From Paragordius varius (taxonomy: Eukaryota; Animalia; Nematomorpha): a stretch of DNA of 64,000 nucleotides. The stretch is taken from contig OZ176050.1 in the NCBI GenBank assembly GCA_964247055.1, positions 12,028,001 to 12,092,000 of the forward strand. Reading direction: 5' to 3'. Shown in pieces: positions 22,272-53,149 of the stretch; positions within the stretch are counted from its first letter, which is position 1, and the number at the start of each line of letters is the position of its first letter. The position numbers were made by a program, and so were the translations under genes. The notes under the pieces are model-generated. The model worked only from the letters and a program-made list of their open reading frames with translations. It made no database searches and had not been told where the DNA came from.

Positions 22272-23340
22272 TCTATATATTTATAAAAATGGAAAATGTT
22301 GGCTTTGCGATCTGTTTCCGGAAAACCGGTAGACCCATTCAAATCCAAATGCCGTAAAAATATAATAATTAACCAATGCCCATAGCTTTGCCCTTTTTTT
22401 ATATTTTGCCCCCAATTCAAGTCCACTTCCTGTAAAAACGGTTTTTTAAAAAAACAGAAGTTCAAAAAAACCGTGTCTTTGAGACAATTCTCCCGAAAAC
22501 GAGTTGGACCATTCGATTTCAAATATGATTTTTTTTACTTTTTTTCGATTGCACCGAACATGGTCGGCTGGCTTTTTTAATTTAGGCCCTCTTTTTAACC
22601 GATCCCCCCGTAAAATTCCATTTTTTTCAAAAAAACCAAAAATAATTTTTTTAATCTATTTTTCGCCCAAAGTATGAGACTGTAAAAATTTAATGAGGAT
22701 TCCAGGTATTACCTGTTGAAATGCAAACATTTTAGTCGTGCGTTATTTTATATTGGCTGCTGGGTAGGGAGATACCCGCTAAAAACTGCCCCGTCATATC
22801 GAAATAGCGCGCCTTGGTGCTAAATTTCAGAAAACCTATCAGGTCATAAGAGCTCAGTAGGTGCTTAAAATATTACCCTTAACAATGCAAAAATTTAGGT
22901 AGTGTGATTTTTTAAAATCCGTTAATTAATCCATTCACGTCCTAAAAAATGCGCCACCATAGAATGATTTTTTAGTTTTGAGGCAATTTTTCCAAAAACC
23001 AATGAGAGCATATGGTCAATCAAGATTCCTGGTATTTGCCGTAAAAAGGCAAAGCGTTTTTTTGTTTCGCCCCTGCCCGCGTAAAACTGCGTCACCATGT
23101 CACAGCATGCCTTTGAAGATAAATTTCAGAAAACCTATGAGACTGATAGGAACATATGGAATCCATGATAATTCCAGTTATTCCCCCTATAAAGGCAAAG
23201 AATTTAACTCAGCGCTTTTTCCATATAGGTCTATGGATAGGGGTCTACCGGTTTAAAACTGACGCCATAGGCGTGGTTTTAGAGCTAATTTTCAAAAAAT
23301 TAAGAACCCATACGAGTTCGGTTAAATACATTTCTGGGTA
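22272..23340 (+). mobile_element. Non-autonomous Helitron-like element (copy H2)
   Basis: 5' A|TCTATATATTTATAAAAATGG; about 1 kb of colinear similarity to the reverse complement of 52017-53149 (e.g. GATCTGTTTCCGGAAAACCGGTAGACC); 3' CTAG end not found. Confidence 0.7.
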
Positions 23341-44400: not shown

Positions 44401-44835
44401 TAATTGTTTTAAGAAATATGATTTGAAAAAAATATATTACATCTAATTTTTTCTTCTTTATTATTGTATGGATTAGGTTTATTTTTTGAGATGGGTCTAA
44501 AACGTGCCAGAACCCGTATGAATTGTCGGAAATTAACATGTTCACCATCTCCTTCGTGTAAAAATGCATGTATGATCCTTTCAACCAAAGGATTTATGGC
44601 TAGTTCAGGAATTTTTAAAAATTCATCACGCCTGTTGTATATATATATATAAACAACATATATTATACTCCAATGCACCAGTCCCAGATTTATCCAGTGA
44701 AGTAAAACGGCTATATAAACGTACAATTTGATTTTTGGAAACTAAATATTAATTTGAAATTATATTACATCCAGTTTCTTTCTTAATATCTTCAATCTCT
44801 TCATCTTGAAGCATGTGAGTACTTTTGTTACCCAT
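41461..44835 (-). CDS. CHP1: Calcineurin B homologous protein (EF-hand, N-myristoylation-type start)
   Basis: Exons 44835-44769, 44741-44669, 44631-44441, 44326-about 44222, about 42032-41949, 41514-41461. MGNKSTHMLQDEEIEDIKKETGFSKNQIVRLYSRFTSLDK...IPELAINPL...FAFNLYDLDRDDKIS...ALEKIDVEQKMSIRFLG-stop. Confidence 0.96.
42750..43030. mobile_element. Diverged copy of the TACCATTTACAATTCAAATTCACCC MITE family
   Basis: ACAATTCAAACCTAAA at left and TTTATTTTTAGGGTGAATTC...AAATGGTCTA at right resemble the 56313-56604 copy; similar fragments near 4230-4320 and 49670-49845. Confidence 0.55.
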
Positions 44836-47605: not shown

Positions 47606-47648
<43 letters not shown>

Positions 47649-48398: not shown

Positions 48399-49071
48399 AT
48401 GCGATCATGTAGGTTTAAGCAAGAAAAGTACCATATGGCTTTTATACTTAGAAAGCATGTTGTATTACATAATTTCGCAAGTATTTTTATTATCCTAAAT
48501 ATAGGATCTTACTCTTATATGGGAAAAGATATGCCAAAACTTTTGTATTATCTAAAAAAAAATCAAAGAATACAAGGTCCAGTAAAACCTCCCAGACGCT
48601 TTGAATTATCTAATTGGTAAATATATATTAATTTTAGGAATCATGCATCCGAGTTATCAGCACTTTCTCAGAGATTAAATCTTTATTGTGATCCTTTGCA
48701 TTTAAAATCAATTATCTTACACCCTACCTTCAGCGGCTTGGAATGTGAAAAGAGCGCAAAAATACTTGATGAAATAAATATAATAAACCCTGATAGCTAT
48801 ATGTTTATCGAACTCCACAAAACTGGTAATAAATAATATCTATATTTTAAGGTAAAAATTTTCTGGAAGCGTTAACTATGATGTATTTAAGATACACTTT
48901 TGTTGATTGTCCGGAAGAGATCCTCATGTAATTTTTTAACCTAATAATTTTCGCAGATCAATAAAAGAAGAAATACTTTCGTTGCATAATACTGCAAAAT
49001 TAGCAAAAATGTGTGGATTGCGAGATTTAGTTTTGTCTCAGGTATTTAACATCGATATCAAATTTTAAATT

Positions 49072-49113
<42 letters not shown>

Positions 49114-51594
49114 TAGCGTAAATCTCGTGCTGCTATCTATTGGAAAAACGGGACAATAAAATGATCCACATATGTGGATTATTTCGAAACATTTTAATAG
49201 ATATGATATTATAGGAATTTTAAAACGGAGCATTTATACTAATATATTGTTTAATTGGGGAAAATAGATTTAAAACATTTTTTTGTGGACTTTGTTTTTT
49301 GAAAAAAATGGCATTTTACGGGGGGAGCGGGTAAAAAGAGGGCCTAAATCAAAAAAGCGAGACGACTATGTTCGGCGCAATCGTAAATAAGTAAACAAAA
49401 ATCCTATGCGAAGCTATTGTCGGGGCATTTATTAATGATTATATTTTTTCGAAGTTTGGAGTTGAATGGGTCTACCGGTTTTCCGGTACCAGATCACAAA
49501 GCCAGCATTTTCCATTTTTATAAAATTATAAAAATCATCAGTTCATAGCGGCCAATTTTTTTGGCCTTTGGTAGAAAACAGATCCAAATTTTTATGTATA
49601 TTTTGCTCATAATATTTACACTTTGTCATTTTAAATTTCTTTAAAACCTCAAATTTACTCTCTTCATATCTAATTCACCCTTAAACCCTAAAATTGTCTT
49701 TGAGCTACATTAACTCATATTTCATACATAATGTTAGTTTTTGATATATTTTAATAAATAAACAGAAGTAACCTAATTTTAGGGGATAAGTGTTTAAGGG
49801 TACATTTAACTTATAAGAAGGTGAATTTTAATTGTCAGTGGTATATCCTAAAACATTTATTATCATTATACTCGCCTAAATATTAGACAACCGTATTTTA
49901 AACTTTTTTCAAGAACATTGTTAAAAACATAAGAGAGTTTGACAATATTGACATATAATGACTTATTTTATATTTCTTAACTTTATTTGACGCCTAATTT
50001 TAATTTTTATATACTTAGGACATCCCAGATAATGCAATTTTAAGTGAAACATTGTTTGCCCTTTTTGGATGTATCATAAGCAATAACTCTACTTTTGAAA
50101 TGGATCAGGTTGGATTTTTTTACCAAAAAATTTATTTTAAATCAGAAATTAACGACGTATAAAAATTATTTGTAATCGAAAAGAATTTTATGTTACAAAC
50201 AATTCTATTTTGTAATATGAATTTTAATTATAAAGATTTTCTAAAATAATTTATTTGATGATGTTGTTTCTTATATGATATTTTTATGATTTTATAGACA
50301 TTTGGAAATATTATTGTAAACCCCCAATCCAATAACATTGTTAACGCCATGTGTTTGGCTATAGATATTGTATTCACACAACTTATTGCCCTTGATCCAT
50401 TTGAATTTTGGGATTTCCGCCATGCATTTACTTTGTGTGAATCTATTTTAGCCAAAGATTTAAACTTAGTACCTGCTAAAAACAACAATCGCAATGATCA
50501 AATAATTGAAGCCAGGTTTAGAGTTGTCATTTTTTGAGAAAATAATGAAAATTTTAATATATTTTTAACATTTTTTTACAATTAGATTAATTAGATCAAG
50601 TGGAGTCAACACAATATACCCATTATACATAGTTGGATTGTATCACAATCAAAAATATATCTCCCAAGGTTTTTACCATTTTTAAAAATTTAATTTTATC
50701 CATTCATGATAATAGTTAGGAATGATAAATCTTCACTAATTGTTGTAAAGATTTTCAGTTTTTTAATTGTATTTGACATACAAATTAAATTGTTAAGTAA
50801 AATATATGTTTTTTAAATAAGAGATGTAAAGAAATAAACACAAGCTATTTTTTTGTAAACTCACTATTTTTTTAACCCTTTTTTCGCATAAAATATAGGA
50901 TTAGGTTGTTTTTTATGGGGCTATATAGGACGTTCAACTCCATATTTTATGCCATAAAACACTTTTAATCGTATTTGGATAAATAGAAAAATTCGAATCC
51001 ATAAATATAGTTGTTATTCGAAAAAATTGCTCTTTTATTTATTTTACGGTTATTTGAATTATTTTGAATCTTTATTATTTAAACTTATCTTTTCAAATGT
51101 AATGCATAATATTTTAGTTTCTTGTTAAATTAAAATATGAATTTGTAGGTTTCGGAGAAACGCTGGAAATAGCAACTGATCAAGCAGCTCGTCAATGGCT
51201 TAAACAAAGGTTCGGATTTCACCAAATAAACATGGGGGCTTGTTTAAATTTTCGCTACGATGATGTTGTTCCACCCATGTTAATTTCGCTACGCAATGAG
51301 CTCCTTTTAACTTCAAACCAAACGCCAAAATCATTTTTACCCTCAAATTGTGAATTAAATCTTACCATTACTCCTGGCAAAAATGATGATTCAAAACTGA
51401 AACTTTATCATAATAATAGTAATTATAACTTGTTGCAAGCTCACAAAAGCATTCGCGATTACATGTCATTTCCGGTCGATATAAAACCAATCACCGTTGA
51501 TGCGGACGGACAAAATGTTTGTAAAACACGTAAATTAACACAAGATAACCCGATAACGGGTACACATGATGAGAAAATGTATGAAATTTTATAA
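48399..51594 (+). CDS. MRPL44: Mitochondrial ribosomal protein mL44 with long C-terminal extension
   Basis: Exons about 48399-48480, 48505-48616, 48638-48825, 48852-48927, 48957-49040, 50019-50108, 50299-50515, 50586-50668, 51150-51594. PPRRFELSNWNHASELSALSQRL, LSETLFALFGCI, EARLIRSSGVNTIYPLYIVGLY, GFGETLEIATDQAARQWLKQRFGF parallel the mL44 sequence as I recall it. Start codon less certain. Confidence 0.88.
49113..49530 (-). mobile_element. Non-autonomous Helitron-like element (copy H3, internally deleted) in MRPL44 intron
   Basis: 3' end ...TTTACGCTAG|T abutting a (TA)n tract; shares GGTCTACCGGTTTTCCGG..CAGATCACAAAGCCAGCATTTTC with H2 and H4. Confidence 0.72.
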
Positions 51595-52016: not shown

Positions 52017-53149
52017 CTAGTTGACCCTGTCACGCTTCGATCTGACGTATCTCACTGATAATTATTCTTAATAATTTGCAATAAATAGAATAAATGGAGA
52101 TAAAAAAATTATAAAAACATATTTAATAAAAATGGCTTTAATTATTCTTTTACGGGTTTTTGCATAATGAAATATTGTTTACTCGAAATCGACCATAAAT
52201 CTGTGCCTTATTAAAGTTAATATTCAACCATCATTGGATTTATTTTAAAATTATCGTTTTACGAAATCATGGTTAAAAGTTTTATTTTCAAATTGTGTTC
52301 ACACAGCTAAGATCAAAGGATACAAAAATTAAATCATTTTTGGTCCCTTTTTAAAGGGTCATACAAATTCCCAGAAATGTGTTTAAAGAACTCGTACCTC
52401 TTAGGTTTTTTGAAAATCGGCTCCAACACCATTTTTGTATGGCGTCTCAGTTTTAAACTAGACCCCCACCCATAGATCTATATGGGAAAAGTGAGTTAAA
52501 TTTTTTGCCTTTATAGGGCAACTATTTGTAATCATCTTTGATACCATCGTCTCATGGATTATTCGAAACTCAACACTAAATAATCGTTATATGATGGCGT
52601 ATTTTTAGGGCATAAAGGCCCCAAATTAACGGCTAATTTAAACCCGACTATTATAAGCTTTTAATGAGCTCATATGGCTTCATAAATTTTCTGTAAAATA
52701 GATCCAAAAAACGCAATTTCTATATAGTGGCGCAGTTTTAGCGGCTATCGCTTATTAATAAAAGCAAGACTAAAATTTTTGCTTTTTAACAGGGAATACC
52801 TGGAATCCTCATTACCGCTTTCATACACTGTGCAAATTATATTGTTTTTTTGAAAAAATGGCATTCCGACTATGTTCGGCGCAATCGAAAAAGTAAAAAA
52901 AATCATTTGAAATCGAATCCTACACGTTTTCCGGAAAATTGTTTCAAAGACACGATTTTTGTGGACCTCTGATTCAAAAAACCGTTTTTCACGGAAAGCC
53001 CGATGGGGGCCCAATTCAAAAAAAGGCGAAGCTATTGTCGGGCCATTCATTAATGATTAATTTTTTTGACATTTGGATTTGAATAGGTCTACCGGTTTTC
53101 CGGAAACAGATCACAAAGCCAGCATTTTCTATTATTATAAATATATGGA
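52017..53149 (-). mobile_element. Non-autonomous Helitron-like element (copy H4, near full length)
   Basis: 3' end GTCA-GATCGAAGCG-TGAC-AGGGTCAACTAG|T (short hairpin then CTAG, inserted before T); body colinear with H2; no TIR or TSD. Confidence 0.78.

Follow-up and report, generated by a model that had tools for sequence, protein, structure and literature searches.

The locus described here raises the question of whether three segments of 21, 26 and 29 nt, which follow each other closely in the genome of the nematomorph Paragordius varius, are excised as introns from the transcript of a working protein-coding gene, and, if so, which mode of splicing may handle them. To our knowledge, introns shorter than 30 nt were long thought absent from animals. 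The segments lie in a window of 64,000 nt (contig OZ176050.1, positions 12,028,001 to 12,092,000 of the forward strand), this word being used below for the whole stretch of DNA that was analysed, and in the initial annotation, made from the letters alone, they were described as introns of MRPL44, i.e., the gene of mitoribosomal protein mL44. Their boundaries as given there match the sequence exactly, and all three begin with GTAA and end with AG. Combining the analysis of reading frames, family matches, haplotype differences and introns of other genes in the same genome, we conclude that these segments are probably genuine U2-type GT-AG introns, the first three of a single-copy functional nuclear mL44 gene.

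Gene model and family assignment

With all introns removed, the eight exons (48435-51594, Table 1) compose one frame of 1368 nt, which is a multiple of three and ends with a terminal stop, and the predicted product consists of 455 residues. Its N-terminus, encoded in exon 1, is basic and carries no acidic residue among the first 31, the presequence character of this part being judged by eye. The peptides formerly ascribed to exons 1 and 2 do adjoin the 21-nt segment on either side, as follows from translation and from exon bookkeeping. The expectation that retention of the segments gives a stop or a frameshift is borne out for all three, each meeting an in-frame stop within 1 to 4 codons (TGG TAA for the segment of 21 nt, GGT AAT AAA TAA for that of 26 nt and ATG TAA for that of 29 nt), and the frame is additionally shifted by the retained 26-nt and 29-nt segments. 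Stops are also read from the sequence if exon 3 is skipped or if exon 1 is joined straight to exon 4. In base composition, the tiny introns (GC from 0.10 to 0.24) are set apart from the exons (0.28-0.36), the window having about 27% GC throughout. (AT)n microsatellites are situated just upstream of the gene (47608-47645) and at the start of intron 4 (49078-49112), and (AT)n runs are present in at least five other places of the window.

Table 1. Exons and introns of the eight-exon model proposed for the mL44 candidate (positions within the window)
Feature	Position	Strand	Description
Exon 1	48435-48616	+	182 nt; ATG start; its last two bases open a Trp codon
Intron 1	48617-48637	+	21 nt; GTAA..AG; phase 2; GC 0.10; TAA in frame right behind the donor
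Exon 2	48638-48825	+	188 nt; putative start of the mL44 RNase III-like domain (PF22935 match)
Intron 2	48826-48851	+	26 nt; GTAA..AG; phase 1; GC 0.12; the split codon would be Gly once the segment is removed
Exon 3	48852-48927	+	76 nt; assigned by frame bookkeeping
Intron 3	48928-48956	+	29 nt; GTAA..CAG; phase 2; GC 0.24
Exon 4	48957-49041	+	85 nt; assigned by frame bookkeeping
Intron 4	49042-50018	+	977 nt; (AT)n run and very high-copy interspersed repeat
Exon 5	50019-50108	+	90 nt; putative second signature region of the RNase III fold
Intron 5	50109-50297	+	189 nt
Exon 6	50298-50515	+	218 nt
Intron 6	50516-50585	+	70 nt
Exon 7	50586-50668	+	83 nt; putative beta-strands of the mL44 dsRBD-like domain (PDB matches)
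Intron 7	50669-51148	+	480 nt
Exon 8	51149-51594	+	446 nt including the stop; putative end of the dsRBD-like domain and lineage-specific tail

Family searches were carried out exon by exon, with single exons as queries. Residues 1-38 of exon 2 align to positions 1-39 of the Pfam profile PF22935 (RM44_endonuclease) with 12.5 bits and E 0.16 against a cut-off of 27, and exon 2 is the only exon having a match in Pfam. For the 27 residues of exon 7, all matches in PDB (8/8) are mL44 chains of mammalian mitoribosomes (E 0.057-0.21), and the aligned part corresponds to residues 257-282 of the 332-residue human mL44 chain; the scores are weak and the list is exclusive. PDB searches with exons 1, 2, 3, 4, 5, 6 and 8 gave no mL44 match, and no family is matched by exon 3 (25 codons) or exon 4 (28 codons) taken separately. 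When exons were aligned pairwise to E. coli RNase III, only exon 5 gave a marginal result, with a local match to residues 110-121 and a score reached by 2% of shuffles. Word searches with exons 2 and 8 found no orthologue, the atlas search for orthologues returned unrelated bacterial clusters only, exact-product look-ups for three ORFs of the locus gave no record, and the bacterial relatives of RNase III collected as a proxy profile turned out to be enterobacterial sequences only, at least 96% identical. The single match of a profile-free search with exon 2, 1083 residues long, was rejected as spurious.

Since two separate exons match one family, and do so in the correct N-to-C order, the gene is taken as mL44; the identity proposed initially is thereby considered very probable on the strength of PF22935 on exon 2 and of the exclusive mL44 matches of exon 7 in PDB. 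Known mL44 proteins (e.g., PDB 3J7Y chain c) are composed of an RNase III-like and then a dsRBD-like domain, and the candidate would have the same order. It differs from them in being very diverged, so that no single exon reaches the curated threshold, and in the length of the predicted product, which exceeds the 332 residues of human mL44 through a C-terminal tail having no detectable relatives.

Chance, decay and the second haplotype

Continuity of open frames is by itself no better than chance, and evidence from polymorphism and from family membership is needed in addition. Chains of ORFs connected by three introns occur in the window once for GT..AG, this being the mL44 locus, and 0 to 8 times for control dinucleotide pairs; likewise, in two single-junction scans of the window, GT..AG pairs joining open frames were not above the control pairs. 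Such similar numbers obtained with control pairs in an AT-rich window, along with the fact that most exons give no significant family match, speak for a pseudogene in decay or for ORFs chained by coincidence, where the GT..AG ends would be coincidental and no splicing would occur. We regard this explanation as very unlikely. It is opposed by the closure of the frame across eight exons, by the two separate exons whose matches indicate mL44 in the right N-to-C placement, and by the genome-wide search, in which the locus is single: a copy of MRPL44 elsewhere, which was initially suggested as the sign of a pseudogene, is found neither in intact nor in processed form, leaving the genome with no other copy to serve as the working gene. 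The remaining arguments against decay come from the comparison of haplotypes.

Among the sequencing runs listed as containing the locus, none is RNA. Four runs (X4, X5, X3 and X1) were aligned over 3,271 letters, their contigs representing three samples and two studies. Over the mL44 locus these contigs are DNA, running straight through the introns and piling up on the repeat of intron 4. A diverged haplotype is present in sample S3 (runs X4 and X5) and occurs as a second allele in the assembled sample (X1). Between 48380 and 51650, the divergence of this second haplotype amounts to about 2% for exons 1-3 and to 10-17% for introns 3 and 6, and the population is, at the level of the compared sequences, very diverse.

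Against the second haplotype, exons 1-3 show nine differences, and eight of them are synonymous in the model frames (P 1.8e-5 at an expected fraction of 0.198), whereas the same differences read in the other two frames give 2 and 0 synonymous ones. All six differences of exon 1 are synonymous, those listed for exon 2 are one synonymous and one Ile-to-Leu, and the single difference of exon 3 is synonymous as well. The sole exonic indel is an in-frame deletion of 3 nt at 51529 in exon 8, in contrast with the out-of-frame intronic indels, which are of 1, 4 and 4 nt in intron 7. Substitutions have accumulated in intron 6 (7 in 70 nt) and in intron 3 (5 in 29 nt, with the length kept), intron 1 has neither differences nor indels, and intron 2 is spanned gap-free by a contig of the second haplotype, so that all three tiny-intron lengths are preserved and no indel falls within 48617-48956. 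In exons 6 and 7, 10 of the 12 changed codons are non-synonymous, mostly conservative, and the candidate protein, judged from the sequence, is fast-evolving. Given the haplotype differences, the pattern of indels and the distinct GC of exons and introns, purifying selection acts on the gene in the very frames linked by the tiny introns, and the gene is, on this evidence, no pseudogene.

Positions of the boundaries were addressed separately by listing, for each junction, all GT..AG pairs that leave both model frames open. Acceptors of introns 1-3 proved to be unique among such pairs. At junction 3, the 29-nt solution is the sole one compatible with open frames of exons 3 and 4, and the support for these two frames consists of one synonymous difference, frame closure and the uniqueness of this solution. 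At junctions 1 and 2, there is one alternative donor each, located upstream at 48545 and 48745, respectively. Thus, only the 29-nt segment might be tiny, the first two introns having 93 and 107 nt, in which case 48545-48616 and 48745-48825 would be intronic. Both alternative pairs leave the model frames open, and short introns of CCT genes in this genome commonly have 60-76 nt, which would suit such an arrangement; yet it seems unlikely on several grounds. Against the 93-nt intron, the exon frame makes 4 of 4 haplotype differences within 48545-48616 synonymous (P 2e-3). Against the 107-nt one, 48745-48825 contains 1 to 3 differences as compared with 7/70 nt and 5/29 nt in accepted introns, and the case here is weaker than against the 93-nt donor, two differences in one contig being unlisted. 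Both stretches have exon-like GC. Moreover, the donors at 48545 and 48745 have neither G at position -1 nor a GTAA start, while both features are common to the three proposed donors and to the first tiny intron of another gene, GMPPB (see below).

Finally, the interruptions might be errors of assembly or might be bypassed in translation, by read-through of stops or by frameshifting. Read-through would be conceivable for intron 1, where the length is a multiple of three and a single TAA is present, so that the frame would hold. In the 26-nt segment, neither of the flanking frames is open over 48834-48848, and two frameshifts would be needed. Errors of assembly are hard to reconcile with identical lengths in contigs of three samples from two studies and with the lack of indels just mentioned. 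In addition, all three segments share the GTAA..AG form, and like segments have to be removed from GMPPB. Explanations of this kind are therefore given hardly any credence, and removal of the three segments as introns is the reading adopted below.

Splicing signals and introns of other sizes

Rfam models detect U1 (124 bits) and U2 (178 bits) in the genome, both in full length. The 5′ end of U1 contains ACTTACCTG, U2 contains GTAGTA, and both are canonical; the idea of spliceosomal losses put forward in the initial annotation has so far found no support. The matches are organized in large arrays, where full-scoring copies are mixed with degraded ones (17 for U1 and 46 for U2), at G000:C6:565000-634000, C6:3718000-3734000 and G000:C3:257000-527000. 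In the tiny introns, TAAT or CTAAT-like motifs were read by eye from the sequence 7 to 13 nt before AG, although at such AT richness they are expected by chance.

The likeliest mechanism would be ordinary U2-type splicing by intron definition. The canonical 5′ end of U1 would pair with the GTAA donor, and the canonical branch-site-binding sequence of U2 would pair with the A-rich TAAT/CTAAT-like site, the two sites being brought together across the intron, as in the tiny introns of ciliates, dicyemids and myxobolids. The coexistence of tiny and kilobase-size introns, noticed from the outset, holds for this model, since the same predicted transcript must also lose segments of 70, 189, 480 and 977 nt. 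If so, one spliceosome would have to handle a 45-fold range of intron sizes within one transcript.

The longest of these introns was previously described as a Helitron-filled intron of 978 nt. A long intron does stand in the model, with 977 nt, while the Helitron label is unsupported. The insert at about 49261-49530 belongs to a very high-copy interspersed repeat, other copies of which lie at 22274-22662 on the minus strand and at 52867-53141 on the plus strand, so that the window contains three copies aligning over about 270-390 nt. The search for Helitron hallmarks (5′ TC, 3′ CTRR and a hairpin 10-12 nt before the 3′ end) found none in these three copies; the repeat has a 5-bp hairpin about 45 nt from the end of similarity, and no CTRR end is evident. 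Across four DNA runs, the summed word depth of the repeat exceeds that of the neighbouring sequence 10^3- to 10^4-fold, and about 135 nt present in the two other copies are deleted from the interior of the copy in intron 4.

Tiny introns are predicted in other genes as well. In GMPPB (locus L011), the profile PF00483 is matched by exon 1 at positions 1-42 (E 2.5e-11) and by exon 3 at positions 72-132 (E 9e-10), and the exon of 27 residues between these two matches occupies 29 profile positions; GT-AG segments of 20 and 25 nt lie between the three exons (L011:1627-1752). In a gene of a CCT subunit, an in-frame intron of 36 nt with two stops resides within a conserved motif (L006:421-456). Other CCT introns inspected directly have about 60-76 nt, and lengths of 300-700 nt follow elsewhere from the distances between matches. 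Overall, nearly all introns seen in nine CCT-family loci have 60-700 nt and one has 36 nt, which is a small sample and no census, and in the mL44 candidate 3 of 7 introns are tiny. As far as these loci represent it, the P. varius genome has tiny introns as a minority class, and the median below 30 nt typical of dicyemids and myxobolids is not reached.

The placement of tiny introns was similar in all the genes examined (3/3: mL44, GMPPB and the CCT gene), as they are found at the 5′ end: introns 1-3 out of seven are tiny in mL44, introns 1 and 2 in GMPPB, and the tiny intron of the CCT gene falls within the first 70 codons. Introns downstream of them range from 60 nt to about 1 kb. One more segment of the same form, 27 nt long (GTAA..AG, 44742-44768 on the minus strand), separates open frames of 42 and 110 codons in the window, with no Pfam match on either side, and could represent either a further tiny intron or a coincidence.

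Comparison with known tiny-intron systems

As of September 2026, animal introns below 30 nt were published for myxobolid myxozoans and dicyemids only, and their presence in further animal lineages was predicted (PMC13644364). Myxozoans have no Wnt pathway (PMC5684314), and Dicyema japonicum possesses one Wnt-domain gene in a genome of 67.5 Mb with 36.7% GC (PMC6736024). Because at least seven Wnt loci are found in the P. varius genome, it is, by its gene content, neither myxozoan nor Dicyema-like. The best matches of its Wnt4 exon are many bilaterian Wnt4 proteins with about 40% identity. This Wnt4-like exon (L003:1498-2112, minus strand) has about 40 additional residues, rich in Asn/Gln, inserted into the conserved Wnt domain. 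A search for Col_cuticle_N found no match, and as its control gave none either, this negative carries no information. The nematomorph genomes studied so far have 200-300 Mb (10.1101/2024.06.11.598342), as compared with 110.6 Mb for the present one.

Taken by itself and at the level of sequence, the mL44 locus would be one further case of a known kind of tiny intron. A broader generalization can be offered tentatively, with doubt outweighing confidence, namely, that P. varius exemplifies a bilaterian, neither myxozoan nor dicyemid, having a discrete class of introns of 20-36 nt, which are clustered at 5′ ends, coexist within transcripts with introns of 60-70 nt and with repeat-filled kilobase introns, and are served by canonical U1 and U2. 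If true, this would mean a third, independent origin of introns below 30 nt in animals and the first such genome not dominated by them, with extreme shrinkage depending on position rather than being a by-product of genome compaction. Tiny and kilobase introns combined in one predicted transcript would separate intron shrinkage from compaction of the whole genome and would provide, as a natural test case, sites 21 nt and 977 nt apart that a single spliceosome has to pair. On the practical side, the mL44 gene and probably many others in this genome would come out truncated or split from gene finders whose minimal intron is about 40 nt.

Among the known systems, myxobolids are, like P. varius, animals with GT-AG introns of 20-30 nt, and they also share with it a 5′ signal reduced to about GTA, the clustering of short introns within genes and canonical U2. 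Their tiny introns, however, constitute the majority, the median being 27 bp in Henneguya salminicola and 22 bp in Thelohanellus kitauei and Myxobolus rasmusseni (PMC13644364), whereas most CCT introns seen in P. varius have 60-700 nt, and the presence of a 977-nt intron beside tiny ones in the mL44-candidate gene is unlike the myxobolid pattern. In dicyemids, where the median intron of Dicyema sp. is 27 bp with two thirds below 30 bp (PMC6543705) and the mean intron of D. japonicum is 38 bp (PMC6736024), the size range, the GT-AG ends and the conserved exon-intron layout of ordinary animal genes are as in P. varius. The two differ in that tiny introns are dominant in dicyemids and a minority class in P. 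varius, and also in genome size (110.6 Mb in P. varius), in GC (about 27% in the window) and in the number of Wnt genes given above for D. japonicum and P. varius. Ciliates, with introns of about 25 nt in Paramecium and 15-16 nt in Stentor (PMC5014332, PMC9505925), resemble P. varius in intron length, AT richness and conventional spliceosome, but they have almost only tiny introns and reassigned stops, while P. varius uses the standard code, and in its genome kilobase and tiny introns would coexist.
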